This document shows positions 1 through 35,552 of a stretch of DNA of 64,000 bases, piece after piece (within the stretch, counting starts at the first letter, position 1; each line of letters opens with the position of its first letter). The position numbers and the translations under genes were made by a program. The notes below the pieces were generated by a model that saw only the letters and a program-made list of their open reading frames with translations, did no database searches and was not told the origin of the DNA. Source of the DNA: Cyanophora paradoxa CCMP329 (lineage: Eukaryota > Plantae > Glaucophyta); NCBI GenBank assembly GCA_004431415.1, contig QPMI01000278.1, forward strand, positions 1 through 64,000, written 5' to 3'.

Positions 1-1031
1 CAGTGTCAGGCCACCTGCAGCTACTACTTTGCCGTTGCACTGTATGACTGTGCACGTATGTATACGTGTACATGTATGCATGCAGCGCAGCAGTGGTACT
101 GCGGCATGCCTTCGAATTCCCGGAGTCTCCCGAGTCCTGACCGCGGAGTTCGAATTCGATCGCGATCGCCAGCGCTAGCGCAAGCGCTGGCGCCGGCGGC
201 GCCGGCGATCGCGATCGAAGGCTGCAGGCTGCACGGGTGACGGGGCCCTGCATCCTGAACATTCGTCTTACATGCGTGTCTCGTCGATTGCCGTTATCCA
301 ATCAATTTTCCACGTGCACGGTGATTCGGTAAGTCTGCCGTTACTACGGTTACGTACTGCGGCAGTGCCGCAGACTCCGCAGTGCAGCGGCGCCGGCGCC
401 GGCGCCGGCGCAGCACTGCGGCAGCCTGGCAGTACGGTACTATAGCTAGTACATGTACAGTAGTAGTACTAGTTCTAGCCTAGTACTAGACTACTACTAG
501 TAGGCTTCTAGCCTAGTTGTGCGCCGCTGCGCGCGCACCTCTGAATCGAAGTTCCCCCCTTCCAACTGGCAACTTCGCCGAGTGCGATCGCGACGGTCGG
601 GACTCGGGAAATCGACTCGCCAGTCCGTCCGACGGTCCGAGTCCGAGCACCAGCTGCCGCAGTGCAGGCCCGTACGCGTGCAGGGTGCGCGCCGCTGCGC
701 AGCACTGCGCGCGCGCACGGGGGCGCCTGCACCGTGGCACCTGGCATCGGCGCCATTGTTGCGGCGTGGCGGATCTCACCCTAGGCCTGCGCGCAGACAC
801 GGGCAAGTGACAGGCGACCCGGGCCGAGCGAATGCGGGCACCCGGCACTGCGGGCGAGGCCCGTCTGCCCTCCGGTGCCGCGGTGAGCCTTGCGGAGTTG
901 CAGCGCGCAGCGCGCAGCGCGCCGCGGCCCCGGGCGCGCGCGCCCCCGGCCCGCAATGACTCGTCTTTCAAAAATGTAATTTGGTCCGCGCGCGGCTAAT
1001 CTTGACGGTCGTGCGCGCGCAGGGCAGCGCG

Positions 1032-4000
1032 ATGCCCCCGACGCTGAGCCACTCGATGGTGTCAGAGAAGTGGCAGAGCGGCACCGTCGTCGTGGAGATC
1101 GACGACATCGGGCCCTTCGAGACGGCCGCGGCGGCTGGCCGAGACAAGCTGATCATGAAGGGGGCGAACCACCCTGCCCCGCAAGTCGTGCGGCCGCGCG
1201 CGGCGCGCGCGCGCACCGATATTGCGACTTCAAACCGTCTGATCATGACGCGCACGGCTGCGCGCGCAGAGCTCCAAGCTCAACGTGACCGCGTCGGCGA
1301 CCCGCCAGCGGGACTACGCGTCGGCGCCGCTGCCCGACCCGCGGCCCGAGGAGCACGTGCTCTACCTGGACGCGTGAGCTCAAGCTCGGCGCTGCGCGCC
1401 ATCGAATGCCCCCCAAACGAGCCTCGGAGCGCCGACGCCGCGCGCGCAGTTTTCTCAGCTTCGCCCGGGGGGCAGACGCCGCATCCGCCGCGAACCTCGC
1501 GGCCGCCCTCCAGCGCTACGGGCTGAAGGTCCGCTCCCCCGATCGCGGGAGCACAAGCGCTGGCAGGAGGCCTAAGGGGGCACCGCGGCAGTGCTGGTAC
1601 GACGGGGAGCTGCCCGAGGCGGGGGGCGACATCGCGAACCTGCAGCACCGCAAGCGCCTCTCCGCCGCCATCGAGGGCTGCGCCTGCCTCGTCGTCCTCG
1701 CCACCAAGGGTGCCGCCCCGGCCCAGCACCGGCCGCGGGTCCCCTCGTCATCGTCTCTGGCTGACCCCTGCGGCGCCGATCGCGATCGCGACTGCTCGCT
1801 CACAATCAGAGTGGTTCTCGTCGCCGTGCGTTGCCCCATGCATATGTTCGCCAATCTCAGACGCGCCAGCTCGCTCACCGTCCCAGCGCAGGGCCTGCGC
1901 GACGGAGCTGCGGCACGCCGCGTGGCTGGGGCGCAAGATCGTGACCCTCAGCCTGGGGGGGCCCTCCCTCGCGGAGCACGCGGCGACCGCCGGCACGAAG
2001 CAGGCGCTCGAGGCGGCGGCGCAGCTGCAGCAGTGCGAGGAGATCCGCCTCAAGGCGCTGCAGGGGGACGAGTTCCTGAGGGCCCTCGAGCGCCTCGCCT
2101 CCGAGATCCGCGTGCGCCCGCCCCGCCCCGTCCCTAGATATAAGCTCGCGATCGCGGCCCATGGCCATCACAACGGACGCTCGCGATCGAGCACTGTACA
2201 TGTCTGACTTCCATATGCGCATGCGTTGCACGCAGCCGCAAGGGACCTCTGTCGTCGAACCGGGTCCGCACCTTCAGCTTGCGTTACTTCTGATCATGAA
2301 GTTCAAGCGCTCATGCTCATGATCACTTCGGGAATTCCGCAGACGCGAACGTACCGATCAAGCCGTACGACGTGATGGTGAGCTACCGGCGCAAGCAGAC
2401 CGACGAGATGCGGGTCGTCTGCGAGCTCCTCAAGGAGAAGGGCATCAGCCACTGGGTGCGGGATATCGCTACATGTTTCTTTTGGCTGCGCTTGCAATTG
2501 ACTGCGCGCCGCGGCGCCAGGTCGATGTCAACACGGAGAACGGCATTCTGAAGGGCGTCCAGTGGTGCCTGCATACAGTCCACTCACCTCTCCTCTCAAT
2601 CTCACGCGCACGCGGCGCGCGCGCAGGGGCAAGGCGATCGCGGCGGCGATCAAGGGCTCCGGCGTCATGCTCGTCCTCCTCACGCGGGACTGGCTCCAGT
2701 CCCAGTACTGCATCGACGGTGCCCCCCACTGTCCGGAAGCCTACCCCCCTCCCGCCCCCCCTCTCCCCGCCCCTACGTGTACGAATGCCTAGAAGCCTGT
2801 AGCGTCTCCCTCCCCCCTCCCTTCCTTAAAAGCTTCCCCCCCCCTCCCAACTCCCCCCCCACCCCTTCGCCGCCGCCCCGGCCCCTCTTCCGCCTCTCTC
2901 TTCCCGTTAACGTTAACGTTCCTGCCCTCAACCCCTGCCTCCCGCAATCCCGTCCCTCATGGCCAGGCCCGTCCCTAGGCCAACTCATGGCCAGGCTCGT
3001 CCTAGGCCTGCCTCCCCCACGTCTCCTCCGGGATCCTCCCGCCCCCCCCCCTCCCCCCCTCCCCCCCCCCCCCGCATCCCCCTCACCCACTCCCCCTTCC
3101 CCTTCCCCCCCGCCCCCATCCCTCTCCCACACACACCCCCTCCCACCCCCGGCCCTCCTGCCTTCCCCGCCCCCCGCGTCCCGCCTCATCGATCCGCCCC
3201 CGCCCTCCCCCCCCCCCCCCCCTTCCCGGCCCACCGGCCCACCGGCCCTTCCTGCCTACCCCGACTCCCGCCCCCGCCCTCTTTCCCTTTCCCTCCTGCA
3301 GCTGAATCCATATCCCGTATTTCTGAGAGTCTGAGAGTCTGACCGTATTTAATTTGCGCAGAGTTCGAGTACGCGCTGGCGCAGAGCAAGCGGGTCGTGT
3401 GCGTGTTTACGCGCGCACGTGGCCTCAGTCTTAAGCTTGCAGTCGACCGTACCCGCGCGCAGGGTGCTGGAGCTGGAGGAGATCCCGCCGCTGCCCGACG
3501 ACGCCGCGGACGGCGCTTCCGACGCCGAGCGCAGCTTCTTCCGGTGCAACGCTGCCCCCCCCCCCCCCCCCCCCCCCCCTCGCCTTCGCCCGTTCGCTTT
3601 AATAACGTTCTTATTGTCTCGGAGGCAGGCGCCAGAAGATGTGCCTCGAGGTATGCCGCCAGAGCCAGCAACTTGGCAACTGAATCTTTTAACGACCTGA
3701 TCATGATCATGACGCGTACGGCGCGCGCAGGCGGTGAACACGTGGCAGAAGGTCTCCTTCCCCGGCCTCCTCGGCGCCGGCCCCGAGAAGCTCGCCGCGG
3801 CGCGGGGGAGCCCCGCCTTCGAGAAGGCCGTCCAGGAGATGGAGGAGGCCATCACGGTCCGCCCTTTAAATTGCCTCTCTACCTGGTCGACTGCTTTTGC
3901 TAAAGCTTTCCATGCTTTCGCGTATACGTAGTTTGACGCCGAGGCGGCAAGGCTTCACACTCAGGTGCGGTCGAGATTTGTCAGACTAATTATATTCATG

Positions 4001-7000
4001 AGGCCGAAGCATGCCTCTCGCCCTTGCGATCGCAGCTCACGCTTCGCGCGGACAAGTACAAAGAAGGTTCGCTCAAAAGATGGAAGCTTGCACTTGATTT
4101 TTCAAGTTTGAAATTGCGCTTATTCAATGCGCAGCGCTCGGGTTCAGCCCCGCCGTCCGCTGGACGGGCCTTGACAGCGTCAAACTCAGTAAAGTCCCCA
4201 AGGAAAACAGAAACAAGGCGGAAGGTCAGGCAGTCGATCTGGGTATAGGTTCCATGATTAATGAGACGGTATCATCTTCTTGCAGCCTTCCTGCTTCGAG
4301 GCTTCGCTTTGCAGGAGGCCCTCGATGTGCGCTGCTGAATTCTCGATTCATCTTTCGCTTAATTTTCGCTACATCGATCGACTTGGGTCTGACTTTTTCC
4401 GACAATCCTCAGTGGATCTCCAAGACCGATCCTTCTTTCTCATCGAGCACGAGTGTGCTTCCCAGTTTCATAACAAGCATGGTCCGTTAACTCTCTCGCT
4501 CTTGGTGCAGATCCAATATTGATTATACGTTACACATGTCTTCAGTTTAAGAAAATTGGGTCCTCGAGCTCGCCATCTGCGAAACACGACGACGGACAAA
4601 CCAAAGGCGACGGAAATGCTGCCAATAAGCGCAGCAAGCAACTGCGCCCCACTCCAGAGCACTTGGTGAGAAAAAACGTTTTTTAATCACTAGTTACAAA
4701 TGATCTTAATCTCGAGCTTCTTTTTAAATTTCCATAAGTATTGCTAACGCGAACGCTGTGATCAGATTCTGGCGCACCACAGTGTCCGGTCTTCCGTCCG
4801 CGCCAAGAAAATCAAGGCTGGCGTTGGATCAGTGATCGCTGCGGGTTCGTTACGAGCGCTTTAATGTTCAATTATGTCTTTGCTAAGCGAGCGCTCGCGC
4901 TTCGTGCGTGCCGCGCCGCAGTTATCATCGGAGCGCTCATTGCTGCTATCGTCTTCCTGAGTACGTTTTATCTGATCGCGATTATAATGGAATTCTGCGC
5001 AGCTGATCTGACATTAATAATCCCTTCAATGACAGTCATTTCGGAGGCGTCGAAGAAGGAGGCTGAGAACCAGAAGCGCGAGGCGGAGCTGCAAAGCAAG
5101 ATGGCGATCGAGAACGCCGAGCTGGCCCGCCAGAAGGAGGAAGAGGCCCAACGGCAGAGCAAGATCGCAACAGAGAACGCCGACCTCGCTCGACAAAAGG
5201 AGGCCGAAGCTCAGCAGCAGAGCAAGATTGCCACAGAAAACGCCGAGCTCGCCAAACGAAACGAGGCCGTGCGCTTAAAATATTTTGAGAATGTCCTATT
5301 TTCGAATGTTTCTGATCATGAACAAAGAGATTAATAAACTTCTATTTTTTTGACGTAGAACGCGACTTCATTTGCGAACCTGGCCAGCCAAAGACTGCTG
5401 GTTTGAATTCAGATTTATATTTTAATATTTATTGCATTTGCTTCTGGCTGACGCCATGCGCAGGAAGTGCAACTTGCCAATCAAAACCTATCTGCTGCTC
5501 TGAATGAGACCGAGACACAAAGAAATGTACGCACTGAAGTTGGCCCCGCAATCGAAATTGATGCTGTCAATTATAAGCTTACAAGTGCTCTTCGGTTCAG
5601 ATTGCGATCCAGCAGCGCATTCGCGCCGACGAGCAGACCGACATTGCGAATTTGCAGACGGACCTTGCTGTCACGCGGCTTAAGGTCCCCATATATATAA
5701 TTTAAAGAATACTTTTGAACTTTTTGTATCGGAGCGACGTCGACGCGCGTCGCAGCAAGTCGGCGAGCTCGCCGCCAGCCTGAACGTCTCTCTCGTGGAG
5801 GCGGAGATACAGCGGCGCGCCGCACAGACGCAAGCTGCTATCGCCACCGAGCGCTCCAGGTAACAGACAGGATAAATTTCATCTAGAAGCAACGAATGAG
5901 ACGTGTACTGAGGGATGGCGCAGTGTCTCAGCCGCCGTGTCGTCCAGCTCGACGGACCCCGAGCTTGCCCTTCTGTTTGCTCTCGATGCGCTGGGGAGCA
6001 CCCAGAGCTCCGGGTCTCCGGTGGCCACCAGTGCCGAGAACACGCTGCGCTCCATCCTCGAGAAGCAGGCGGCGGAGCAGTACACGTCCACCGGCGGTGC
6101 GACGTCGGCGGCCACCGCGCGGCGGCTCCGGCGGCTGCAGGAGGAGCCGGCCGCTCGGGCCGTGCCCATCAAGGACTTCGTGGCTGCAAACGACTTCTTC
6201 GACTTTCAAATCTTCTCCGCCACGTCGCCCAACGAGGCCTACTCGGTTCTCGCGGCGGTCGGCATTATTGCGCCCTCGCGAACCCGGACCGCGTTCATCG
6301 ACGACTCGGCGGTCTCCGATCCCAGCGGGACCTTCCAGGTGCGGTGGACGTATATATTGAAACATGAAGTTGAGCATAGTTTTATATACATGCTTACTTG
6401 AATGTGCAATGCGTGCCGCAGCTGAAGTTGATGGCGCACGTGCGGGAGAAGGGCGGGAAGCTCGCGTACGTGATCGAGGACCGCCTCATCGGCGGGCCAC
6501 ACCGCACGAGTTTCTGGGTGGGGTTTGGATTATCGATCATTGTTTATAATTAGTGTGGTGTGCTCGCACGATCGCGAATGAACGCAACCACAGGCGCATT
6601 ACCTGGGCGCGATGCGCGTCATGATCGACAATTTCGGCGACGTTGTAATCCATGTCAGGTAAAGCTTTCTCAATTGGATATTAATCGTGGCGCGTGACCG
6701 CATATGCAGACGCCTCGGGTTCGAGAAACCGGTGAGTCATGTGAACCTTGTTATTCTCTATAAGCTTGCAATTGTGCTCGCGGAGCGCGCAAAATTATGA
6801 ACAAGGGTGCCTGTTTATGTGCCAATTCGATCAATGACTACGCAGGTCTGCCAAGGTGTCCGGCTAGGCTGTCTGCCTCGCGTTACGGGCATTGCTCTCG
6901 TGTACACTCCCGAGGTCAGAAAACAGTCATTAGAACTAGCTTATATGCAAATTGGCTTTTATGGTTGCTCGTTCCTCGCGATCGCAATCGTCGTGATACA

Positions 7001-10000
7001 ATTGCGCAGAAAGCAGGCCAGCGGGGCTGCCTGAAGCGCGAGGGTGACGACGGGTACCTCTTGGACATCCACGACGTCTTTGTCGGTGTGCCGCATGCGC
7101 ATGAATTCGTTCGAGCGTTCTGAACTCATTTGCAATTCAGGGGACGGTTACGTCGCGTTTCTCACGGCCTCGTCCCCGTTCTACTCGTACACGACGACGA
7201 GGCACAAGTACCGCGACCCGAACAACATCTACGTTGGAAGGGATACTGCGAGGTTCTTCGCGCAGCTCGAAGTCGAGCAAGGCTACAAACTCGAAGGCGT
7301 CTGGAAAGGTCAGCTTGACGTTCTGGCTTGTGTGCTCGGTTTAATTCGCGATCGGTTAATCGAGCGCAGGATGGGAAAGCACGCGCCTTTACGAGTGGTG
7401 GCGCGCCGTGCCGTCCACGCTCAACTTTGAAACAAACTACTGCATGGCAAACAACCCCGACTTGTTCCACGTTCCCAGAAAAGCGTCCCAGGTCGCCCTC
7501 CGCATCCACGTCGGTCGCATGTCCTTCCTCGACCGCTCCGACTCGCCGTTCGCCGGTGCGCGTGCTCGCTGGCCATGGCCGCAGCACCAGCGCCTGTTTG
7601 TATTTTAGACCTGAGCGCTGAACGCTGTGCGCGCGGGCAGGCCTGCTTCCCTCAAGGTAGAACGGCGTATAATTATATAATTTACCTTCAATTCGACATT
7701 CAATTATCCGATGCGACTTTCGTGCAGCCCCGATCTCTGTCAATTCTCGCCGGGCGGCTGGAAGACAGTACTGATTGCCAAAGACTCCTTCTCTGGAAAC
7801 GAGCTGCTCAACAGCAAGTGCAACACACCGGATGAGATTGCTGGGGGAGCCAGCCCCTACTGCACTTTAGGGGGGATGACGTTCAAAGGCGATTTGAAGT
7901 TCCAAGCGCGTCCCAACGCCTACCGCGTCCAGCCGCTGCACATGGCAAACGATATCGAGGTAATCATGTTCGAATTCATCGGATGTTATAGCTGCGGTTG
8001 TGGCCAATGTAACTTCAATTGCGGATCATGATCAGGCGTCATACCCGTACCCCGCCGGATTCGGTTTCGCTCCCAGCACTTGCACTTTCGGGGGAAATAC
8101 GTACATTCTTGTGGGAGGCCAGGTTCGTGCCTGTACCGGTCAGAGCCGGAAGCGTTTGCGCACGAGGCTGTTGTACTCACGCGCGCGCTCTCCTTCTGCA
8201 GGGCCGATTCTTCTTTATCAAAAGCGACGACTTGAAGGCGGATACGGGCGACCCTTCTCAGTACTCCTTTCATCTCGATTTCCCACCGCTATACGAACAT
8301 TCGACTGAATGGACTTGGGGGGACACCTCGCTGGGGGGGGGCTCGACGATGGACGAATGGCCTGGTATGCGGTACCAGTCTTTCCGTCGCCTTAACAGCA
8401 AGAAGGCCTTCGGCATCAGCGACCTCCACGTGGCTTCCGACTGCAGCTTGGTCACGGCTGTCTTGCGGATAGAGGCCGGTTTGTACCACACAATATTTGA
8501 CAGAATGGAGTACAATCTGATCAGCACCGCGGTGCCGGAGCTTCTCCTCCCACGTCCGGGAGGAGTTGGTGGCAATCTGCAGAATCCTAACAGCTCGTTA
8601 GGACTGCACACTGTCTTCTCGGACTGGACTGACCCACACTGGAAATCAAACCCCGAAGCTTACTGGGACTCTCCTTTCACCAAAACCTCCAACCGAGCCT
8701 TTCGCGATTCGCTCGCAATCTCGAACACGCGATCGCAAGACCCTGGTGTGCACGTGCCTGCATGAATAACCTCATATACAAACACATATATATTTTATTT
8801 AATTAAATATATATATGAAGTGCTAGGTCGTTTTATACTTCGACGCAGATCTTGTTCTGATCGGCCTTCTCAAACTCACCGGGCTATTTTTGGATTATGA
8901 TCTGAATTTAAACTATCCCGATTTGGAAGTTCCCTGTGCTCTGCTTCTTCGAAAGGCGAATGGTGCGAGGTGGTGGCGGTGGTGGCTGGAGTCGATTGCA
9001 AGCATTTTCTCAATCCTGCTGCTCGCAGGGAAAAGCTCTGAATGCATTCGCCAGCAGCTAGTTGTTGTGCCGATGACCAACTATGTCAAGTGGCCGCGAT
9101 TTAAAGAGCCACGACTTTCCGGCTTCACTTTTTGGTGCGCACGTTAAGAATAATACTAGCGCTTTTCTTGCCTTCGGCTCTAGCTATAGAGCTTAAATCA
9201 TCGTTTTGCAGGATTGCAGGGGAGCTGGGTTGTGGATTTGACTACACAGGCTCGCCGCTCGACTCAAAGCGACGCTCCATTGCGGTATCGATGTCTGCCG
9301 TCTTTTATGAAAGGGGCACTCTCATTCGTAAGATCAGATCCAGGTAATTGGCGACGGCCCATTTATTGCTGTCGGCAGTCAAGACGGGAAGGTGATCATT
9401 TACGATGCGCGCCCTCCCATCAACGCCAAGCAGCAGCCGCCGGTGCATATTATCGAGCATATATACGGCGTGTTATATACGGCATATATATAGCTAGTTA
9501 TACCTCATCAATATTGCTGATCATTTATTCTTATTTGAATCGAATATATATCTACGGTTGAGCAAATTTTTAACTGATCCAATTCTCAAACAGGTCGAGT
9601 TCAAGGTGCTCATAGGAGACACCAGGTTGATCAAACTGTCGAGGGACCGGAAAACCCTTGCTGTATTTGACGCAATCGGAAATGCCGCAACGATGTCAGT
9701 CGACCTGACGCATCCGTTCGCTCCAATTGCGAAAAAGGCGAGCGCCCATGGCAATGATCATGATTGTCAAAGCCACTCATCGAAGTCGTGCACGTGTGCA
9801 TGCAGTCTACGGCAGTTTTCGATGGCACGTCTGCATCGCTTCAGTCTGTACAGGCAGGCCATTGAATCTTCCTGGCGACGGATGTCTTTAAGGCAGAGAA
9901 GGTGTTCGCGGAAGTGCTAGGTCCAAACACAGGACTTTTTTTGAAGAACGACATGCTCTGTCACTTCTTTCTACCCGGACGCGTCACAGTGCGCTATATA

Positions 10001-13000
10001 TTGCTACTATTTTGTTTCGGTCAGCCACATCTTAGGCACTTACGCATATACAGGGTCCTCTTCACGACATTGACGGACCATCAAGAATTAAACGCCTTCA
10101 ACCAATACAAGTCCGCCCCCTTTCCCTTCCACGCCCCCCCCCCCCCCCCCCCCCCCTTCCTCCCTCTCACTTTTCATCTGATCCCTACCTATTCAATATC
10201 CGTCAGATCGTGCGAGGAACACAGATGTTTCTGCACGCAACAGCCTTGACATCAGCGCAAACGTTAACGTGAGCCTTTTTAGAAATCAGTTGAAATGCCA
10301 GTCAGATGTCAGTTACGATTTTTGATTGGTTTCCCTTCGGAAACGTTCAGAGGTTGCGATGCCTGCGACCGCAATGTCAACGATACTCGCTGTGCGCTTT
10401 CGATTCAACTTTTCGATCCGCTAGACACTTTTACAACCCAAACTAAATTGCATTCGCATTAAATATTCAGTCTTTGCGGAGCACTCGCCGTCCGGCCTCC
10501 TAATGGCTCTCGACGCGACGGGAGGTACATTGTTTGCGAGCTCGTCTCCCGGTTGCAGTACATCACCTTCTAATTATAATCTGTCGCCGGCACACACGTG
10601 GTGCGAATTCGCTCCACTTTCTTGACGTTGACATAAAGAGACAGCTCACTATCGTCTTCACTCGAGCTTGACTACGAGCCGACATCTGATATCGATGCTT
10701 CGGATATGCATGCGCAGGAAGTGGAAGGCGGACGCGGCGGGCCCGTGGTCGGCGCCCTTCAGCTTCACGCAGCGGCTCGACGACGCGACCGCGTACACCG
10801 TCGAGGTCCCCGCCGCCTCCGCCTTCCGGCCCTTCGCTCTGGATGTCGAGCGGCTTGGACCGACAAACTTCAACAAGTACTTCCCGAAGACATACATGGC
10901 TATTCAAGGAAGATCGACACGAAGGCCGAATATGGGTATCGCGACGGATGAGTACAAATGCACGGGCGTTAATGAATTCACTGGAAGTTGCTGGTCATAC
11001 GAAATGACGAAGAAAGCGACCCTGCCAAAGCTCGCCGAGTACGATCCGAACATGTTCCCGTCACCTTCGGAGCCGTACCGCCCGCTCGCCTTCCACTCGA
11101 GTGGCTGGGCCGCCATCGCCGGCGTGATCTACCGGACGGACGCGAATGCGCGCCCCGGCCCTCGTTCGCTTCTGCAGTGAAAGTTAGCGTTCGTGTTTCA
11201 TGGCTGATCATGTTTTGGGTTGGTTCATCGTAGGGGCTGCCGGATGCGTCGACAGCTCTCTCTGTCTTTGAGCGGCGCCCGGAGCTTAAAGAGCCGTTCA
11301 ACGATCTCTTCGCCCCCTCCGCCGAGCTCATGCGCTGGAAGCGCGACATGGAGCGCTACAAGGCGGAGCAGAACTTGAAGCTCCCAGACAAAATGCCAGA
11401 GACAGACATACCCCTTCGTTTTGCTCTGAACAAGCCCATAAGAGCTTCGATAACAGGTCTGCGTGCTTGTATGCAGCCGGCTCATCTTTCCTGATCGGTC
11501 TGTCCCTCTCAATATATTAATTGAACGCTTAAATTCCTCAGACGCTCAGCACTCAGCTGCGTTCAGCGATGACGGCCGCTCTGTCGCCTTCTGTTTCAGC
11601 GCATCTTCGACCATCCTGGACGAGGGGCTCTCGTGGAACAACTTTTTGGGGTTGGGACCCAGCACCGTAGCATATGCGATCGGTGGCTCGTCAGACTGCC
11701 CTGAAGGGACCATATTCTGCCCCACGCCATACGAGGTGGACTTTCCTGGGTTCAAAGGCTACTCGCCTTCGTCCGTGCGCGGAGGAAGTCGTTCGGGATT
11801 TTCCGAGAGCCGCGAGCGTATCGTGATCATCCGCGGGACGTACGACGAGAGCGCGTGGAGCGTCCAACCGCCGGTTGTGCCGGAGTGGAGCGGCGACAGT
11901 GTCCGGACGTGCAGGCAGATGGCGTTCTGGAACGACGTCCTCCTCGTCGACCTGAAGCAGGCAATCCTTGTTGTGAACAGCGACGGCGGCTACGCACACG
12001 TAGCGCAGCAGTCAGGTGCCAGCTTCAAGATATCGATTCGTTTGGTAGGACTTGCGCAAATTAAAGTTTCTAATTTCCCACCATGGCCAGAATTGCCGAC
12101 GCTTGACCTGGCCATGCCAAGCGGGATTGATTTTAGAGAAGGCGAGATCGACCCTGGTGAATTCATTTCTAAATATTAATATTTCCCAGAAACCTTTGTT
12201 TCACTGACTCAGACACGCGCGCGTACGTGTCGTGACAGACTATCAATTCAATTTCCGAAACGGCAAAGATCGACTGCGGAAGAACGCTAGAGTTGGGTAT
12301 TTGGTCACTAATTATATAGAGCTCGCTGAATCGTTATCGCTCACCATGCTCGCAATTCGAATTCGGGCATTGGCCTTGTATGCTTACGATCATGATCAGA
12401 CCCTCCTACGGTAATGTGCTTTGCATGGCGATAATGTGCTTAATTCCAATTGACTGCTCGAATACTGTTCGATCGCGAATTCGCAGTGGACTGCAACATG
12501 TACATTTCCGAGGACCGCTCGATGCTCTGGCTCGTGGACTACACTGGCGCACGCGGATTCAACGGCACGGATGCGCTGCGAAAGATGGATTTCAGCGGGC
12601 TGGGCGAGCCGCCGTCGCCTTCGGGGGCCGCCTTCGTCGTTCTCCCCTTTGGAAAGTACGGACCTCGCTTCTCACGCAACGGTGCGCGTGCGCGTGTGCG
12701 ATCGCACGAAGCGGCAGACACGCTCTCCGGGGTAATGATCATGATGAGGGAGTGCTGCGATTGCATCCGCAGGTCGCTTCGTTGCACTCTGGAAGTCGCT
12801 GGTGGAGCTGCAGATTTTGGACCTCGAGGACGGCGCCAATGCATTCGACAACGCTCGCACCGTCCCCGTTGACTTGCAGTACGTGAATAGCGACGGCCTG
12901 CTGCCAGCACAGCCCACCGTGAGCGACGACGGCATGTACCTGGCGCTGCGCTACGTAAACGCCGGGGGCAACTTTGCAGTTAGGGTCATCGACCTCAAGG

Positions 13001-13895
13001 CAGAGGCTCTGATCAGCTCGGCGTGCTCACGTATCTCCCGCTCGTTTGAAGACTCCGAGCTCAAGAGTGTGTACGGCTCCGCCAACCGCACCAGCCGCTG
13101 GCAGGAGCGCGTCTGCGCTGCGGCTTCGAGCTCGAAAGGGGGGGCTAGCGCTGCTGGCGCTGACGCCGCGCTGGCGTTGCGAGCACCGGCAGCGCCCATC
13201 GTGCGGGTGGCATCCAGTGTCACAGCTGCGACCACGAGCGGAGCGCGGCAGTACAACCTTCACGTCTTCGTCTTCAACACCGTGGGCGGCTCTGAAGTTC
13301 CCACGACCGCCAGTGTCACCTGCCAGCCCAAGAACGGAGGCGAGCCGGTGCTGACAGCGCAGCTGGTCTCGCTGGTGCGTCGACGTCTGCATTTGATCTT
13401 GATCATGAACAATCGATATCTATGCACGGTTGTCTAACTTAGTGATATCGATGATATTGATGTCTGGGTCGCGCTGCGCAGAATTATTCGAGCCGGCCGT
13501 ACATGTTCCAGTCGAGCAGCCCGTCAGGGGAGGCGCTGCTGGTGGACTGCTCGACGCCGCAGCAGCGCAGTGTTCGTCACTGGCCCAACGTGATGCCGCA
13601 GCTGCTTGCGGCCGAGGCGAGTTTCGCTCTCGCTCAGCCTGACTCCCCCTTCGTCTGCTCCGCCACGGTGACAAGCGCGGCCGGCACGTCGCCAGCCGGC
13701 ACTGCGGAGGGCGCGACAGCCTCAGCCAGCGCGCCGATGGCAGTGGAACCTATACCTTTCCGTCTTGTCAGCAATTTCGGCGGAATATTCCTTGAGCCTT
13801 TATGCGACGCTACTTTATCGTTTCCGGGCCTGCTGGACTGGCTGGGGCCTCCAAATTCCGGCGTCATGGCGAACCCATGGCCAGATTGCACATAA
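1032..13895 (+). CDS. Multi-exon tandem-TIR transmembrane protein: TIR-TIR-helical linker-TM-coiled coil-beta-propeller-like region-FN3-like C-terminus
   Basis: Manual splicing gives TIR1 (LDAFLSFARG..CWYD..AIEGCACLVVLATKEWFSSPACATEL) and TIR2 (YDVMVSYRRK..HWVD..AIKGSGVMLVLLTRDWLQSQYCIDEFEYAL). These are followed by a hydrophobic segment VIIGALIAAIVF (~4921-4957), coiled-coil repeats (IATENAELARQKE, 5040-5270), DPELALLFALDAL (~5955), beta-rich exons, and a stop at 13893-13895. The start codon and middle exons are uncertain. Confidence 0.8.
2719..3361 (+). other. 643-nt C-rich intron interrupting TIR2
   Basis: GT donor at 2719 and GCGCAG acceptor at 3361. Removal joins YCID-E-FEYAL in frame. 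The interior is dominated by poly-C runs. Confidence 0.8.
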
Positions 13896-14674
13896 CGCTT
13901 TCTTGCAATTAAGAGGAATAGAATTCAAATAGACTAAAATCGATCATGATGTATATTATGAATCATGATCATACGCATGCGCATGCAGCCCGCGGCCCAT
14001 GTAGTTATAGGCTGCAGCTGAAGTCGTGCATGTATATGCATGTGCATGCATATTCACTTAAAAAAGCTTGACGTCGACGTCGACGGCGACAAAAGTTGTG
14101 CCATGACCGCAAGTACTAGCAGTGCTGGTCTTCGCGATCGCTTTGCCCCCCATTCTTTGCTGCATCCATCGGCTTTAATTTGGGGGGAATTTCTGGAGGA
14201 AGACTCTTCGAAATCGGTCGGATGGCCATGGTGACTCTCTGTCACAAATTAAAAAACAAAATGCGAAATTCGCATTTGTGAACAGATCTAGTACCTGCAC
14301 ATGTACATGTACTAAGTTATAACTTATTACTTATGACGCATGCGGACACCCGTAAAAAAACTCAGTTCTCACGGAACGGCCGAGCCAAAAATCTTCGGTA
14401 ACTTGATTGAGGTCAGAAAACTTACCTTAGGGTTGTGTCAACGCATATGAGAACACAGTGTGGTATACGGTATATAACACCAGATTAAGGAACTGAAATT
14501 TTGACTTTCCGCGTTAATATTAGGTACCGCGCTTATTCTCGAAATCCACTGCGAGAACGCCAGATACATTACCCCCAAGTGAAACTAAATTCAAAATGTC
14601 AGCGCGTTAATTTAATAAAAAACGGCAATTTTAATTTTGCCCCCCCCCCCCCCCCCCCGCGGATCGATATCGAT

Positions 14675-20928: not shown

Positions 20929-21090
20929 CCCCGCCCCCGCCCGGGCCCCGGCCCCGCCCCCGCCCCCTGCCCGCCCCCGCCCCGCCCCGTTCTAGATCTC
21001 GCGCCCCGCCCGCAGCTGCAGCCCGCCTTTTTTGGCTGCCCGGCCCCCAGGCCCGTAAATTCGATGCACCATCTCGCCGCCGCGGCCGCG

Positions 21091-21763
21091 CCGCTCGACC
21101 TCTGGGGGCGTGTGTTGCGGCGGCGAGGAAAGAAAGAGGGCGGGCTCAGCGGGCGGGGGAGGCGGGGGAGGAGGTGGGCGGGGACGGGGGCAGGGCGGCG
21201 GCGGCGGAGCGGAGGGCGGCCCACGGCTCGTAGCGGTCGTCGAGGGCGCCCCCGGGGCCCACCGCTCGACCTCTGGGGGCGTGTGTTGCGGCGGCGAGGA
21301 AAGAGGGCGGGCTCAGCGGGCGGGGGAGGCGGGGGAGGAGGTGGGCGGGGACGGGGGCAGGGGGGCGGCGGCGGAGCGGAGGGCGGCCCACGGCTCGTAG
21401 CGGTCGTCGAGGGCGCCCCCGGGGCCCACCGCTCGACCTCTGGGGGCGTGTGTTGCGGCGGCGAGGAAAGAGGGCGGGCTCAGCGGGCGGGGGAGGCGGG
21501 GGAGGAGGTGGGCGGGGACGGGGGCAGGGGGGCGGCGGCGGAGCGGAGGGCGGCCCACGGCTCGTAGCGGTCGTCGAGGGCGCCCCCGGGGCCCACCGCT
21601 CGACCTCTGGGGGCGTGTGTTGCGGCGGCGAGGAAAGAGGGCGGGCTCAGCGGGCGGGGAGGCGGGGAGGAGGTGGGCGGGGACGGGGGCAGGGCGGCGG
21701 CGGCGGAGCGGAGGGCGGCCCACGGCTCGTAGCGGTCGTCGAGGGCGCCCCGGGGCCCACCGC
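21091..21763. repeat. 167-bp tandem repeat, about 4 copies
   Basis: Unit starts (ccgctcgacctctgggggcgtgtgttg) at 21091, 21262, 21429 and 21596. The unit spans the last codons, stop and 3' flank of the minus-strand EF-hand gene. Confidence 0.95.
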
Positions 21764-24700
21764 CCGCGCCAGCGCCCGCGACGCCCGCTCCAGCGCACCG
21801 CGCCTGCCCGCCCTCAGCCGGGGGCGCGGGCGGGCGGGCGGGCGGGCGGGCGGGCGGGGCACTCGAGGAGAAAGAGGACGGCGGCGGCGAGGGCCGCCGA
21901 CTTGGTCGCCGCCCGCCCCGCCCCGCCCCGGCCCGGCGAGGCCGGGCCCGCGCCCCCGCCGCCGCCGCCGCCAGCGCCGCCGCCCACTCCGACCCGGGGT
22001 TCGCTGCGCGGCGGGCTCAGCTACATGAAAGCGGGGGCGGGGCGAGGGTGGGCGGACGGGCGGGCCGCGTGCGAAGGCGCGGACGGGGGAGAGGGGTGGC
22101 GGGGCCGCGGGGCGAGGAGGCCGAGGGCGCGGCGGCGGGGCCGGAGGCCGTGTGCGAAGACGCGCTGGGCGAGCTGCAGGGCGTCGGGCAGCGGCAGGGG
22201 CGGGCGCGGGTGGAGCGCGAGCAGCGCGGCCGCCGCCGAGAGGGCCGCCTCGCGCTCGAAGAAGAAGTGCAGCGAGCGCGGCACGCCCGGCCCCTCCGGC
22301 GCCGGTCCCGGGCCCGCCGCCGCCGCCGCCGCCTCCTCGGCGGGGCCGGCCCCGCGGGGCGCCGTGGCGACGGAGGTGGAGAGCGATGTGGCCGGGGAGA
22401 GGTCGAGCGAGGCCGCCGACTGCCCGCCCCAGCCCGTCGAGAGCGACGCCCGGTCCACCGACGGGTACGGCATCGTCCGGTACACGATCTGCGCGGCCTT
22501 CAGGCGAGGCACAATGGAAAGGCGAGTGTGCGGGTACGGCGTGCCTCGGGGCGCCCGGCGGCGGCCTGCCCGCCGGCCTGCGGCGGGAAGGAGGGCGGCT
22601 TGCGGGGTGCGTTGACCTGCGGCAGCCGCTCTGTACCCGCGGCGCGCAGCGGGGCGGCGGGGCGGCGGTGCGGGGGCGGGCCTTGACGGGGGTGGTCCCC
22701 TCGCTGGGAGTGCTCCCGAAGGGCCCCGCGGAGGAGGCCGGCGAGTGGCGCCCCGCCCGCCGCGGGCTCGACGGCATGCTCGGGCCCGCCTCCGTCCAGA
22801 AGCTCACCTGCGCCACGCCACGCGACGTGGGCGGGGCGGGCCTGGCCGCTAGCGCTCGAGGGCGGGGCGGGGCGGGGCGCGCACGGTGCGCTCCACCCCG
22901 AGGGCTCCACCACCGACGAGGCCCGCGCCACCGCCGCCGGGCCCGTCGTCGTCGCCGGCGGCTCCAGCCGCCCCGGGGGCGGGGCGGCGGCGTCGACCAC
23001 GGCGCGTGCAGCGGCGTCGCCACCGGCGGCGGGGCGGCCGGCGGGGCCGGGCCGGGGCGGGGCGGCGTGGCGGGCGGCGCGGCCTCCGCCTCGTCGGGAG
23101 GGGCGCGCCAGCCCTCGCGCGGCTGCCCCGCGTCGTTTACACGGGGCTCCGGACGGGCGGAGGCGGCGGGCGCACGGGGGAGGGAAGACGTCGGGCGGGG
23201 AGGGCCCGGGGCCTCGGGCAGCCCCTCCACGCTCTCCCGCACCTGCGCAGCGCGCCCCGCCGGCTCAGCCGGGGAAGGCGCCGGGCGAGGGGCCAGCAAA
23301 GCGCACGAGGGGCATGACGGGGCGGGCCGGAGAGCCCGGGCGTGCGGGGCGCGGTGCGGGCGGGGCGGGGGCGGGCGGGGCGTGCGGCGAGGAGGGCGGC
23401 GAGGCGGGCGACCTCGCGCTCGAGCAGCGGCACCTGTGGAGCCGCTCGCGTACGGCGCGCAGCGCAGGCGGGCCGGCGGCGGGCGGGCGGCGCACGCGGT
23501 GGACGAGGGCGCGGGCGTCGGGGGCCGGCCCCGCCGCGGCGGCCGCCCGGCGGTCGGCGGCGGCCTGGCGGGCGAGCTGCGGGGCCGTCAGGGCGGCGGG
23601 CGGGGGGCGGGGCGGGCGGGCGGCGTCGAGGTCGCGGCGAATGTCGCAGGCTTGCTCGTGGAGCGCCTGCACCAGGTCTGCGCCCCGCCCCGCCCCGCCC
23701 CCTCGGCCCGCACGGCGGGCGGGGCGGCGGGGGCGGACCGCCGAGGTTGGCGTAGCCGGCGTTGAGCTCGAGCACCTCGCGTTGCGTCGACTGCCCCGCC
23801 AGCCGCGCATCCCGCGCCTCCCGCCCGCCCACGCCACCTCCCACGACAGCGTCTCCCGCACCGCCTCCGCCTCCCGCCCCGCCGCCTCCGCCGCCCGCTC
23901 CGCCCGCGCCGCCGCCTCCGCCGCCCCGCGCGCCTCCGCCGCGACCTGCCGCAGGGCCTCCCGCAGCGCCGCCGCCCGCTCCGCCTCGTCCGCCGCCTGG
24001 CCCGCCCCGACGGCCACCGCCGCCTGCTCGCCCGGCGCATGCGGCGGCCTCGCGCTGGGCGGGCGCGGCGCCGGCGGCATGGAGGCGCGCCGCTCGGGGC
24101 GGTTGGCCGCCGGGTTCCACGGCGCGCGCCCGGCCGCCGCGTCCCGCAGGTGGAGCCGCGGGGCGGTCGCCGCGATGGAGCGCGCCGAGGCCGCCGGCGT
24201 CGCCCCGCCCTCGAACGCGTGGCCCGCAAGCGAGCGAGCCCCGGCCAGCGGCGCGGGAGAGGCTCCCGGTGTCTGGCATGCGTGCGTGGGACGAAAAGAA
24301 AATCACGAGCCGGGATCGCAGCGGGCGCACGGAGGGGCCCGGCGAGGGCGCGAAGGAGGCGGGGGTGGCGGGCCCGGTGCGGGGCTTGAGCGGCGACGGC
24401 GAGATGTTGAACGCCCGCACCTGCGCAAAGATGAGCTGACGGGCGGGCAAGTGCTCGCAGGGCGCGGCGCGGGGGCGCACGAAGTCGCGGCGCTCGACGA
24501 GGCCGTCGCGGTTCGAGTCAAGGGAGCGCAGCAGCTCCTCCAGCTGCTCCGGCGCCGCCGACGGGAACATCGAGCTGCATATATCGCGAAGGAGAGCAAC
24601 GGGGACGTGCCGCTGCGTCCCCGCCTCCTGAAACAGCCTCCTGCAGGCCAGTCGCCCCGGAAAGCTCGAGGAGTGCAACAGAAACCTCGTCGCCCTCACG

Positions 24701-24972
24701 CACCTCACGAACGGAGGCAGCTCGTCGATCTCGACGTCGTCGTCTGAATCCTCCAGCTCCTGCGCGCCGCCGCGTGAAGAAAGCCGATAGTCGGAGCGCC
24801 TAGGCATCGACGGCGACATTTCGCGGTTTTCGAAACGCGAGCGGGATAATGCGTGAACCTGCGCCTTCAACCGAGCAAAGTCTTCGTCGCCCAGCGAGCC
24901 CCGCGCGCGCTCAATCGACGGCGCCGGCGAGCCGCGCGCGCGCTCAGCCGGCGTCGACGGCATTGACGGCAT
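21647..24972 (-). CDS. EF-hand and coiled-coil protein, multi-exon (full copy)
   Basis: MPSMPSTP start, EF-hand loop EQLEELLRSLDSNRDGLVERRDF, Ala/Glu/Arg coiled-coil exons and a low-complexity tail. Confidence 0.65.
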
Positions 24973-25437
24973 CGAACGCAGGCGGTGGTGCTGGAAGACA
25001 GACGCGATGATGAGCTGCGCACATCGGGAGTGAGGAATTCGAAGAACAAGCGCGGGATGCGTACGCGGCCAGCATACGCGCACGTAACCCGCTCCAGACT
25101 TCTCACGCACCCTTTCCGAGGTGCCCGAAGCGCCGTACGGCGGCGCGGGATGGCCCGCTTCCATCACTTCCCTATCGCTTCCTGTTTTTGCGGCACCCCC
25201 CCGGCCCCCCAGGCCCCAGGGCCCAGGAGAGCACCGAGAGCAGGCCAGGTCAGGCCTGCCAGGCCGGGCAGGCCCTGCCAGGCCAGGCCAGGCCGCCGTG
25301 AGGCATTGGAGGGCAGAACCGGCGCCAAGATGTCAGCGCGCCTGCAATGCTGGTGGGTCCGGCTCTGCGGTCGCTTGGCCCGCCTCCGCGCCTCGGAGGG
25401 TCCCGATCTGAGGCCGTGTTATCGCCACAGCACGGCA

Positions 25438-27304
25438 ATGCCGGATACTCTGTCATCCAACCGGGGATGGCGGGGCCGCCGGGGTGAGCCGAGACCCAGC
25501 GCCGCGTCTTCGAACGCGGTATCCGACGAAGTCAACGCCGCGCCGCGCAGGCGAAGTCACAGGCGAAGACTTCGCCCGGCAGGTTCGACGCCGCGCAGGC
25601 GAAGTCACTGTACATCGGCAACCTCTACCCCAATGTCAGCGAGGCTCTGCTCTATGACCTTTGCGCGACCTTCGGATCAGTTGAGAATGTCAAGCCGATA
25701 AAAGACAAAGCGGTTTGCACGCCCGCTGCGCTAAGAAGGCGGCGATGGAGATGCAGCGTCGCTGACGTGCGCCGCGCCGCGCGAGGAAGACCGGCAACAG
25801 TTCCGGCTACGGGTTCGTGGACTTCTACGATAATACCACAGCGGGGCTCGCCTTGCAGGCGCTGAACGGGCGATACGTCTACGGATATGTGCGTTCTGCA
25901 GTTTCGCGTCGCGCCGGCCGCCTCCCGCCCGCGTTATGACCGCCGCGGGTCGCAGGACCTGAAAGTGAACTGGGCCTTCGCCGGCGGGCAGCGGGAGGAC
26001 ACCTCGGGTGCGTCGCCGGCCTCCCACTCGCTCCGCGGCGGGGAAGGAACGGGCGGGGGCGGGGCAGGCCACTTCCACATCTTCGTGGGGGATCTGAGCT
26101 CGGACGTGGACGACCGGGCGCTCTTCGGCTCCTTCCAGCAGTTCGGCTCCATATCGTGCGCGCCCCGCCGCCTCTCTCCGCCTGCGCGGGGCCGCCCGTT
26201 CTGAGGCGCGGGGCCGGCGGCACAGAGACGCGCGGGTGATGTGGGACCAGGCGACGGGCCGCTCCCGGGGCTACGGCTTCGTCGCCTTCCGGCTGAAGGA
26301 GGTGCCTCGTACCCCGGCGACGACCGCGGGGCGCGGCGGCGCTGAGGCGCCCGGCAGGACGCGGAGCGGGCGATCGAGAAGATGAACGGGGAGTGGGTGG
26401 GGACGCGGCGCATCCGCGTGAACTGGGGCAACAACAAGGCGGGGGACGGGCGGCAGACGGGGGACACGCAGGACTACGCGAGCGTGGTGGCGGCGGCGCC
26501 GTCGACGAACGCCACGGTGTACGTGGGGAATCTGCCCCCCGAGGTCTCCGAGCAGAACATCCGCTCCGTCTTCTCCGGCGCGCCCGCCCGCACGCCCGCC
26601 CGCCGCCAGACGCTTTGCGGGGCGGGGGGTGACGGTGCGCGGCGGGGCGGGGCGCAGAGAACGGGTTCAACGACATCCAGGACATCCGCATCCAGGCCGA
26701 CAAGGGCTTTGCCTTCGTCAAGGCCCGCCCCGCCCCCCTCTGGCCCCGCGCTCCTTTTCCTTCCTTTCTCCCCTCTCTGAGGGGCGGGGCAGATGAGGGA
26801 CCACGAGCGCGCCGCCCGCGCCATCGTCGCCATCCACGGCCGCACCATCGCCGGCCGCTCCGCCCGCGTCCGCCCCGCCCCGCTCCGCACCGCGTTGCCC
26901 TGCCCCCCGGCCGCTTAGTCTCTCGCCCGGCGGCGCAGTGCTCGTGGGGCAAGGAGAAGCTCGGGCCGGCGACCTTCCCCAGCGGCCCGCCGCTGCCGGG
27001 CGCCTACACCACCACCGTCGCATTTCCGGGCGTTGCATTGTACCCCTCGCCCTCGGGGGGCTACTCGGCGCCGCCGGGGGCGTACGACGCGCAGGCGGCG
27101 GGGGCGTACGACCCGCAGACGGCCGCCGCCTACGCCGCGTACTACGCGCAGGTGCGCCCCGGCCCGCCCCGCCCGCCCCCGGCGCCCCCGCTGAGCCGCG
27201 CGTGCAGTACTACCCCCAGTACGCGCAGTACGCCGCCTACTACGCGGCGGCCGGTGCGGGGACCCCGCGCAGAGCCAGGGCCCGCCGCCGCCCCGAGCAA
27301 GTAG
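25438..27304 (+). CDS. UBP1: Three-RRM oligouridylate-binding protein (UBP1/TIA-1/PUB1 family), copy A
   Basis: [86 protein letters not shown], followed by a Y/Q/A-rich tail. Two 1-bp homopolymer differences from copy B lie in the last exon. Confidence 0.92.
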
Positions 27305-27809
27305 CCCCCGCGGCCCGCGCCACGCCCTCCACTTCCCGAGGCCCCCGCCCCGCACCTCCCCAGCTCCGCCTTTCGGCGCCCGCCCGAGCCTCTCTCCCCC
27401 GGCTCCCTTCCCCAGGTCCCGACCCGCCAAAGACCTCCTATGCCCTCCCCGCCGCGCACCCTCCGCCTCCGCATCTCCACTGCGCCCGCCCCGGCCCTGC
27501 CGTCGCCGTGGCACCACCCCGCCCCTCCGCCCTACGCGCCTCACGCCCCGTCCTCCAGCCCTTGATTGACAGCATCCTACATCGATTGTCACAAAGCCAT
27601 CATATTAACTTGCAGTGCGATGTTCCGACGTTCCATGCATTCATCAACCCACTACCGTGCATTCAGCCCGCCGGCGCCATGCATCCCATGCTCTCAGTTC
27701 CAGTGCACGGGGTCCACCTGGCTTGGCATCACTGAGTCATGATCATCAGGAGTCGGTGACTCCGAGGGGGCCCGGGGGATGAAGCCGAGGTCGGGGGTGT
27801 ATTGGGACG

Positions 27810-29510
27810 TTACCAGCAATCTAAATCTACTAGTACTTCCATAGCACACATGTACATATCTTCCGAAGTTCTCAGAGCAAGGACTAGCCTCGTGCGTCGT
27901 GTCTGCACACTGGCACCACGATAGCTCTCGTTCACTACTTTGGTCCTCTGCATCATTGCATGCTCTGCAAATGGATCCTCTGGGCGTCTTCCAAAATCTG
28001 GCTTCCGAAGTTCAGCCAGTGCCGACGCTAGCGCTGTGGTATTGGCAGAAACGTGAAGGAAACGATGGTCCAGACTATGACTCAGTGAACGGAACAGGGG
28101 CACTGTGACACTGCTGTCGCAGCGGCCCTGTTGGAGGGGAACTTCGGAAGGACCCGTGACCTCTAAGTTCTGAGCAGGAAAGGGCAGGTTTAGCTATAGC
28201 CTAGTAGGTTACAATTACGTACTACGGTACACACAGTAGAATTTGAACAGGCCTAGGCACGCAATGCTTCCTCTGATATCGATCATGAGACTTGGAAGGG
28301 GGGCGACATGCTAAAGACGATATCGATGCTCTGCCCTATTCTATCCAATACGATGGGGGGGCGGGGGGGGGGGCGGGAGGGGGAGGGAGGGGGCCGGGAG
28401 GAGGGCTCTTGTGGGCTGGGTGAAGCCTCTTGAAGAGAAAGGAACGAAGAGAGGGGTGGAAAAGGGTCTCAGAGGCCAATGAATTGAAGCTAGCTGTCTC
28501 GGCCCGAGTGCCCACCGCTAGACCACCACCACCGCCGCCTGGAGCGCGGGGAAGCGTGCGATGAAGATACATCCGAGCTCTGCCTGGTCCGATTTCCGAA
28601 AGGCTTAGTCCACGTAGGCTTATCTCTCGACTTGACACAGATGGACACCTTAGTTATATCTCTAGCCATTTGTCTCGGTGTGTGCGAATTCATTTATAAA
28701 GGGCCTCTTCCAAAATCTTGCTTCAGCCAGTGCCGCTGTGGTATTGGCAGAAACGTGAAGGAAACGATGGTCCAGAATATGAGACAAAGTAAAAATACTG
28801 TCAGCACCTAAAACGAGAATATCTATCTCACGAGATGCGAAGTCCACGTGACAAGCGAATGACGGCGGGGGTCGCAAGGGCTACCCCCAAACCACGGAGG
28901 TATTTGTTGTCCAAGAATTCGCCTGCAGTACAGAACAAACCTGACAAGTTGAGGAGAAATTCACCCCGAAGGTCGGCGTTTGACTGCCATGAAGCGCTCC
29001 AGTTTATCGGGCAAGTCCATGATGAAGTCCACGGTTCTATCAAGAGCATTGTCGAACCACCCCCAACGTGCCTAAACACAGCAAGACAGCGCTGGTTGGA
29101 TACTAGAAGGAGAGAAAAAGAACAGGCTGGGGAGGGTGGCAAGCACCTGTTCAAGTTTGACGCCTTGCTTCACGCCTTGCTCCATACCTTGCTTGAAGAG
29201 AGCGGCCTCGCGGGGCGTGCGGGGCTGCAGGCTCTCGGTTTTCCCTTCGTCCTAGTAACTGTGTTAATGCGAGCGCGCACTGGCGCGCGATGCAAGGACA
29301 GCTGGAAGCGCCGCGGACGACGCGGACCTGGTGCTGTGCACGTGCATTTCCAGCTGGCTTGCCAGAAAAGTTGCGGGCCGTGACTCTGCGAGGCTGCAGA
29401 AGATCTTACGCTTAATTAACCGTATCCTCGATCTCCCAGGGAAGGCTCGCAAGCGCACAGATACCTGCTGCAGTCTGCTGGCGCGCTGCTTGACCGCGCG
29501 CGCGTCCATG
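27810..29510 (-). pseudogene. Putative spliced gene of unknown function, copy A, lacking the ~310 bp 5' segment present in copy B
   Basis: Exon-like stretches (WFDNALDRTVDFIMDLPDKLERF; KQGMEQGVKQGVKLEQ) and an internal repeat at 27985-28080 / 28705-28785. The model is not resolved. Confidence 0.3.
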
Positions 29511-29766
29511 TGCTTCTGCAGAAGGCTTGCCTCTGACAACCGGAACGCACCGTCTACGGAGATGCAAGGACAGCCCGAGCGCCCTGAAAGAAGAACACGC
29601 TAGATGGAATGTCTCGGCGCTCAAGGCGCTTTTGGTTGAGGAAGCTGCGCTCAACTACGCTCAGCAGCACCGCCGGACTCCGAATGCCGACTCGGTCGGT
29701 ACCCCCCGGGGGCAGAGCACTGAGAGCAGTGGGCCCAGGGCCCAGACTTCGCTCAAGTTCGCTGAG

Positions 29767-35432: not shown

Positions 35433-35552
35433 TCTCGAGCTCTCGCAAATTCTTCAGCCTAGGCCTACTGGTACCGGTACCGGCCGCGGGCCTGCAGCTG
35501 GCCCTAGGCCTGCAGCTGGCAGCTGTGCTGTAACGCGGCGATCGCGACATAA

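Follow-up and report, generated by a model that had tools for sequence, protein, structure and literature searches.

One gene of the glaucophyte alga Cyanophora paradoxa CCMP329 appears to encode a membrane-spanning TIR protein of bacterial type. It occupies positions 1032-13895 on the forward strand of the 64,000-nucleotide stretch of contig QPMI01000278.1 (assembly GCA_004431415.1; tig00001181) that was analyzed here and is termed the window in the following, and comprises 58 exons with 2574 codons, including one internal TGA. On balance, we favor the reading that C. paradoxa possesses a family of type II, single-pass receptors derived from a bacterial TIR-linker-transmembrane (TM)-WD40 ancestor, and that the present copy bears a recent nonsense change. 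The gene would be best filed as a eukaryotic, strongly remodeled offshoot of an uncharacterized bacterial receptor family. Literature searches returned no description of this receptor family, and Cyanophora is not named in those parts of the TIR atlas preprint text and supplements that were accessible.

Relation to bacterial TIR-linker-TM-WD40 proteins

The exon model was assembled by hand, guided by splice signals. Databases were queried exon by exon, and the joined model was compared only locally with proteins that had already been retrieved; the paralogue P0003 (tig00020848_g14611, 2350 aa; g14611 in the following) took the place of the full-length protein in queries and in both structure predictions. 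An earlier interpretation of the DNA from its letters alone (the sequence-only reading) had listed two TIR domains, linker motifs, a basic patch, a TM helix, a coiled coil, a DPE motif, a beta-rich region, a terminal cap and a tail resembling a fibronectin type III (FN3) domain. After splicing, all of these elements were found in the order given, and the coordinates proposed for the cap (12991-13116) turned out to be exact.

A query spanning TIR2 to DPE of the paralogue retrieved a single bacterial TIR-TM-WD40 protein besides two Cyanophora proteins; starting from this bacterial seed, 120 relatives were gathered. The 78 best loci in GTDB belong to Actinomycetota, Chloroflexota, Cyanobacteriota, Bacteroidota and others. 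These uncharacterized bacterial proteins, which carry a TIR_2 domain, share with the Cyanophora gene the order of TIR, linker, basic patch, TM and DPE, followed more tentatively by blade-like repeats and the Cys cap, and also the predicted N-in layout and the catalytic Glu. In contrast, the Cyanophora gene is interrupted by 57 introns and has an additional bare TIR, insertions within its TIR2 and linker, a longer stalk, an ectodomain of ~1500 instead of ~600 aa, degenerate blades, an FN3 tail and the internal stop. Searches of plasmids with single exons by tblastn gave nothing usable, and scans of viral and metagenome contigs identified no relative. As a separate observation, fusions of the bacterial triple TIR-plus-linker module with multi-TM domains (Bacteroidota) and with CHASE2 (cyanobacteria) also occur (L005, L021, L068; P0060, P0066, P0077), suggesting that the module is a portable signaling head.

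With a hidden Markov model (HMM) of bacterial TIRs only, TIR1 scored 20.8 bits (maximum of the shuffled sequences, -0.5) and TIR2 50.1 bits. Pfam TIR_2 matched exon 3 (TIR1) at E 0.1 and the paralogue at E 1e-23, and the exon-by-exon Pfam and NCBIfam scans gave sub-threshold matches only. The catalytic Glu of helix C is kept in both TIRs (E162, E323) and varies hardly at all in alignments A1 and A5. When the TIR core was left out, the linker matched the bacterial profile in HHalign at 96% (90.5% without the TM) and with a pairwise E of 3e-9, and the alignment placed its motifs in register with those of the bacteria, spaced apart in Cyanophora by insertions. The DPE region reached 6.4 bits compared to a maximum of 4.5 in 300 local shuffles (16.5 bits for the paralogue), and the last blade together with the cap matched a bacterial profile at 78.6% (pairwise E 1.7e-5), the best HMM match being correctly placed. 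Both cap Cys residues are invariant across four aligned paralogous loci. The bacterial affinity claimed earlier was thus borne out by HHalign, alignment and shuffles for the TIR2-linker-TM-DPE frame, and more weakly for the cap. As judged from these comparisons, homology to the bacterial proteins almost certainly extends beyond the TIR into the linker and DPE, and possibly into the cap, the weakest of the matches. An AlphaFold2 (AF2) model of TIR2 and linker of the paralogue, based on a mostly bacterial alignment, had a predicted local distance difference test (pLDDT) score of 87.9 and matched the TIR fold in the PDB with Z 16.5, over the TIR portion only.

The TM stands out with a Kyte-Doolittle value of 3.32 versus 1.44 for the next best window. 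No signal peptide was found, the maximal hydropathy within the first 45 aa being 1.08. Ten of the 11 N-glycosylation sequons are located C-terminal to the TM, and 19 of the 30 ectodomain Cys residues are kept in the paralogue. As a single TM is preceded by a basic patch and followed by sequons and conserved Cys, and a signal peptide is lacking, the protein very likely adopts an N-in type II topology with cytosolic TIRs and with the last ~2000 residues facing the cell exterior or a lumen. The type II layout with cytosolic TIRs proposed previously is therefore in agreement with hydropathy, flanking charge and the missing signal peptide. The stalk contains a 63-bp tandem repeat (5091-5253).

Within the ectodomain, six or so WD40-like blades were detected near aa 1513, 1553, 1969, 2175, 2230 and 2281 (HHalign, 25-91%), and Pfam WD40 matched exon 43 at E 0.005, whereas the bacterial proteins have regular propellers of 10-14 WD40 repeats. 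Of the external WD40 propeller in the sequence-only reading, the approximately six blade-like segments stand; a folded propeller was not recovered, the AF2 model of the ectodomain being poor. The FN3-like tail was confirmed, as the paralogue model fits FN3 in the PDB with Z 10.6 and a root-mean-square deviation (rmsd) of 2.2 over 98 aa.

Independently predicted as a single model, g14611 aligns with the present gene from the N-terminal motif through FN3. Identity amounts to 38% in TIR1, 66% in TIR2, 55% in the linker, 49% in the DPE region, 34% in the ectodomain, 42% in the cap and 44% in FN3, conservation thus being strongest in TIR2 and linker. Other C. paradoxa paralogues are g5807, g8297 and g2734; their outer ends vary, and g8297 carries a CUB extension. 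P0005-P0007 were rejected as relatives because their matches were repeat-driven chance matches.

Origin of the gene

In three protein searches, two of which were restricted by length windows and word indexes, eukaryotic homologues were found in C. paradoxa only. Exon 57 likewise had no eukaryotic homologue outside C. paradoxa among 1.84 billion representatives. Based on distribution and architecture, rather than on tree nesting, a transfer of the receptor gene from a bacterium to the alga is likely. TIR-plus-linker trees united the three Cyanophora sequences in a clade with a very long stem (~2.5 changes per site), the sister of which varied with alignment and model between Actinomycetota, cyanobacterial/Bacteroidota units and Chloroflexota. 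The approximately unbiased (AU) test accepted both the cyanobacterial/Bacteroidota membrane-proximal units (p 0.60) and Actinomycetota (p 0.57) as sister. The test of nesting in a bacterial clade that had been suggested therefore came out differently in each of three trees, which single out no donor and neither establish nor rule out a cyanobacterial one. Thus, the horizontal or endosymbiotic transfer put forward earlier holds with respect to bacterial homology and distribution, but not with respect to donor, direction or endosymbiotic source, for which the trees were too unstable. Independently of the Cyanophora clade, L029 from a contig labeled Micrarchaeota branched together with a sequence from an actinobacterium (97-98% support), indicating transfer or mis-binning.

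An endosymbiotic gene transfer from the cyanobacterial plastid ancestor appears unlikely. Cyanobacteria hold many multi-TIR members, and the tree placing Cyanophora beside cyanobacterial/Bacteroidota units, a position accepted by the AU test, would agree with such an origin. However, the other trees favor Actinomycetota or Chloroflexota, the AU test accepts Actinomycetota equally, and these partly restricted searches found no homologue in red algae, green algae or other glaucophytes. In addition, the tandem TIR alone is no evidence for a plastid origin, since cyanobacterial multi-TIR members repeat TIR plus linker and each of their TIRs is followed by a linker, while TIR1 of Cyanophora has none. 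An old gene passed down vertically and lost in other lineages, or one put together independently from a bacterial TIR-linker and host domains, could account for the very long stem and the weak cap match, and the restricted sampling of eukaryotes leaves some room for it. Against this, five elements occur in bacterial order across both sides of the membrane and the exon 57 search returned no other eukaryote, rendering this explanation improbable compared to transfer from bacteria.

Gene model and in-frame stop

The 57 introns have 55 GT and two GC donors and exclusively YAG acceptors. Their lengths of 51-151 nt (median ~76 nt), with the single exception of 643 nt, agree with the mean intron size of 86 bp reported for the C. 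paradoxa genome (PMC6704402). The exceptional intron 10 (2719-3361) is C-rich and of low complexity and interrupts the codon of the catalytic Glu of TIR2. All junctions are phase-compatible, 25 coincide with the published Augustus model g7418, and 37 of the 57 show at least two of eight identities to g14611 on either side; those around exons 45-48 are the least secure. At third codon positions, the GC content is 0.88 for the cytosolic part and drops to ~0.67 in the ectodomain (window 1032-13895).

The 5' portion of the gene corresponds to g7418, and the best match of exon 57 was EukProt C. paradoxa tig00001181_g7420 on the same contig with 100% identity. As both are pieces of this gene, the published annotation breaks the locus up. 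In addition, g7418 skips exons 11-12, losing Glu323, and exons 18-22, losing the TM. The gene was hidden in the published models due to this split and the omission of TM and catalytic Glu. Two or three separate genes, as annotated from g7418 to g7420, would be consistent with the Augustus split, the internal stop and the lack of reads bridging the halves. However, g14611 is a single model across both break points and colinear end to end, the junctions fit in phase, the 3' piece has neither signal peptide nor TM, and the genome paper itself cautions that C. paradoxa gene models need curation (PMC6704402); separate genes are thus very improbable. That the 5' and 3' halves form one reading unit, as the sequence-only reading had assumed, is supported by the full-length colinear paralogue. 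None of the outcomes which that reading had named beforehand as contradicting it, i.e., broadly distributed eukaryotic homologues, a missing TM or separate halves, was observed.

The TGA at 9863-9865 is the only in-frame stop of the model and had not been mentioned before. Contigs of DNA runs from 2024 and 2012 agree exactly with the window at this site. A sequencing error was rejected since the two runs, compared over 7900-13899, showed no difference except for an uncovered poly-C gap in intron 46; as both probably derive from the same strain, this is no proof of fixation in the species. Selenocysteine is unlikely, as the paralogue has Trp, and the context of the TGA is not one known to be leaky. 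The TGA-bearing exon exceeds 2000 shuffles in similarity to the paralogue, the 18 codons following the TGA are exon-like (0.46, the same as the exon mean and higher than the best frame of any intron), and ectodomain identity to the paralogue is 34% on both sides. The TGA is therefore probably a true premature stop that stays in the mRNA. Conservation is equal on either side of the stop and no second lesion is present, which points to a recent origin of the stop. The present copy is probably a null or truncated allele of strain CCMP329 caused by a recent nonsense change, and the in-frame stop renders it doubtful as a working receptor.

Alternatively, the TGA may be located within an unrecognized intron, the strongest candidate being 9825-9896 (72 nt, with a GC donor), or exon 45 may be skipped, so that a full-length receptor is produced. 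The 961 downstream codons contain no other stop or frameshift and show no added decay, two other GC donors are in use, the acceptor at 9897 scores 6.5, and the 19 codons ahead of the TGA resemble coding sequence only to an intermediate degree. A 45-nt GT-AAG intron scores 80.5 against the paralogue versus 79.5 unspliced, a score that alone cannot separate the two. However, every in-frame option depends on a donor that is weak or of GC type, or else on an acceptor other than YAG, which occurs in none of the 57 introns. The 72-nt intron lowers similarity to 64.5, skipping of exon 45 reduces the score to 3, the unspliced length fits the paralogue (117 versus 118 aa), and the codons behind the TGA are exon-like. 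An intact gene is thus unlikely, and a premature stop is preferred.

Several observations weigh against a bacteria-derived receptor family with a recently disrupted copy, or limit the evidence in its favor. Among the 78 best GTDB loci, the TIR is almost always followed by the linker, and mostly then by a TM, but this share is biased upward as the scan pattern was partly derived from the family. The AF2 model of TIR2 and linker matched only bacterial clusters of the structure atlas (~208 residues, rmsd 2-3 Å), a match leaning toward agreement since the AF2 alignment partly came from family members. AF2 modeling of the paralogue ectodomain from five sequences yielded a mean pLDDT of 40 with only FN3 usable, leaving the propeller weak, and one of three cap profiles, rich in Actinomycetota, missed the weakly matching cap. 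The trees, which were quick trees without a eukaryotic outgroup (the two long rows L002_u1 and L026_u1 were omitted from the second alignment), give neither transfer direction nor donor. A weak GC-donor intron could excise the TGA. Finally, the interval 7900-13899 received no signal from two RNA runs, and of the words sampled from 1000-7000 hardly any occurred in four RNA runs; this absence of signal fits mRNA decay or silence and proves neither.

Table 1. Features of the receptor gene in the window (aa, residues of the predicted protein).
Feature	Position	Strand	Basis
Exons 1-10	1032-1184, 1270-1373, 1450-1528, 1592-1709, 1810-1825, 1892-2111, 2236-2263, 2343-2455, 2521-2564, 2627-2718	+	hand-built model
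Exons 11-20	3362-3398, 3463-3543, 3629-3650, 3731-3856, 3932-3964, 4036-4066, 4135-4224, 4286-4326, 4413-4481, 4546-4665	+	hand-built model
Exons 21-30	4766-4844, 4922-4960, 5036-5268, 5359-5400, 5464-5526, 5601-5684, 5756-5859, 5924-6338, 6422-6517, 6594-6658	+	hand-built model
Exons 31-40	6710-6731, 6846-6914, 7010-7085, 7141-7308, 7370-7555, 7641-7656, 7728-7959, 8036-8122, 8202-8745, 8849-8962	+	hand-built model
Exons 41-50	9029-9134, 9212-9284, 9338-9442, 9594-9737, 9806-9988, 10054-10110, 10207-10268, 10351-10391, 10471-10600, 10718-11147	+	hand-built model
Exons 51-58	11234-11456, 11542-12015, 12091-12156, 12239-12296, 12400-12410, 12487-12681, 12773-13374, 13482-13895	+	hand-built model
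N-terminal extension without signal peptide; Pro-rich motif at its end kept in 3/3 paralogues compared	1032-1362	+	
TIR1 (aa 83-232), catalytic Glu162 at 1905-1907, no linker after it	1363-2241	+	
TIR2 (aa 247-411), catalytic Glu323 codon split by intron 10 (2718 / 3362-3363)	2363-3856	+	
Helical linker of bacterial-family type with Cyanophora-specific insertions	3932-4786	+	HHalign, alignment, atlas structure matches
Linker motif RLHTQ/LTLRA	3950-4050	+	split by intron 15
Linker motif FLLRGFALQEA	4288-4320	+	
Linker motif WI	4413	+	
Linker motif RPTPEH	4645-4662	+	
Basic patch ahead of TM (positive-inside), five basic residues	4787-4819	+	sequence
Predicted single transmembrane helix (aa ~558-581, exons 21-23)	4820-5043	+	hydropathy
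Predicted coiled-coil stalk, four N-glycosylation sequons	5047-5927	+	coiled coil from composition
DPE helix pair (DPELALL..AENT), start of ectodomain	5955-6059	+	
Beta-rich ectodomain, ~1500 aa	6069-12990	+	
In-frame TGA, codon 1613, exon 45, opposite paralogue Trp	9863-9865	+	hand model, reads, paralogue alignment
Terminal cap, Cys pair C2321 and C2351, corresponding to end of bacterial members	12991-13116	+	
FN3 domain, outside the bacterial layout	13189-13706	+	paralogue model

Elsewhere, the window contains a large segmental duplication (22936-31905 versus 45318-54663 and 35069-36770 versus 54730-56396, 94-99% identity) with a retroelement between the copies. This element, a non-LTR (long terminal repeat) retroelement at 38349-45211 (+), encodes endonuclease and reverse transcriptase in one open reading frame and RNase H in a second; as the latter overlaps in a different frame, both probably represent one frameshifted polyprotein. 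A tandem array at 21075-21763 consists of ~170-bp units of 94-98% identity.

Possible function and comparison with known TIR systems

Following the transfer, introns, a further TIR without linker, an extended stalk, large insertions within the propeller region and the FN3 tail would have been added to the gene. In intact members, a probably microbial ligand, either extracellular or in the lumen of a compartment, would cluster the ectodomains, and stalk and TM would relay the clustering to the juxtamembrane linker. The TIRs may then assemble and cleave NAD+, resulting in an ADP-ribose (ADPR)-type signal or in NAD+ depletion. Cleavage of NAD+ is established for enzymatic TIRs of bacteria and plants (PMC11249213, PMC9806590). 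By analogy to this TIR biology, and given the receptor anatomy, it is reasonably likely that intact family members act as clustering-activated NADases. The present copy would yield no protein, owing to mRNA decay, or a 1612-aa receptor without the second half of the ectodomain.

The conserved inner end, the variable outer end and the probable loss of this copy suggest a family of defense type, a role for which we consider the chances to be even. A non-immune sensor or surface protein, with the TIRs acting as scaffolds or giving a low-level physiological signal, is rather doubtful. In its favor, bacterial members join the same inner module to other outer parts such as CHASE2, no known defense system matches beyond the TIR, and the TIRs of animal Toll-like receptors are described as mainly adaptors (PMC11249213). 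However, the catalytic Glu in both TIRs is kept across paralogues, and an expanded family whose outer ends vary and one copy of which was probably lost recently would resemble the turnover of immune receptors.

Like animal Toll-like and IL-1 receptors, the Cyanophora protein would link an outer sensor to a cytosolic TIR by a single pass, which is an analogy and no membership. In contrast to these receptors, its polarity is opposite, with an N-terminal TIR of the bacterial linker-bearing type, and it has no signal peptide and no leucine-rich repeat (LRR) or Ig sensor; LRRs gave no match on the exons or the full paralogue. Membership among Toll-like receptors was rejected due to the N-terminal TIRs, the lack of a signal peptide and the lack of an LRR ectodomain. 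Plant TNP and red-algal TIR-NBARC-WD40 proteins, also from Archaeplastida, have an N-terminal TIR and a C-terminal repeat sensor as well, but are cytosolic STAND NTPases (PMC9806590), whereas the Cyanophora protein has a TM. No NTPase family matched the paralogue or g7418, and linker and TM directly follow TIR2. TIR-STAND-WD40 or NLR membership was rejected as there is no P-loop NTPase between TIR and repeats. SARM1 and Dictyostelium TirBCD, eukaryotic TIR NADases derived from bacteria, share the bacterial affinity and the catalytic Glu (PMC13142454). In the case of TirBCD, the TIR domain alone was transferred, without regulatory domains (PMC13142454), while the Cyanophora gene appears to keep the whole membrane-spanning layout.

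Thus, known bacteria-derived eukaryotic TIRs such as TirBCD are isolated domains (PMC13142454), whereas here the layout of sensor, membrane and effector has apparently been retained. Tentatively, a complete bacterial TM TIR sensor, possibly from the plastid ancestor, may have been domesticated into fast-turnover, NAD+-cleaving surface pattern receptors, an independent counterpart of Toll with reversed polarity, with the present locus as a recently lost allele. If true, this would mean that a TIR surface receptor arose within the plant supergroup by a separate route. The family would provide a culturable eukaryotic entry to a very common, unstudied bacterial receptor family, for which an intact paralogue such as g14611 would be a better bench target than the stop-bearing copy.

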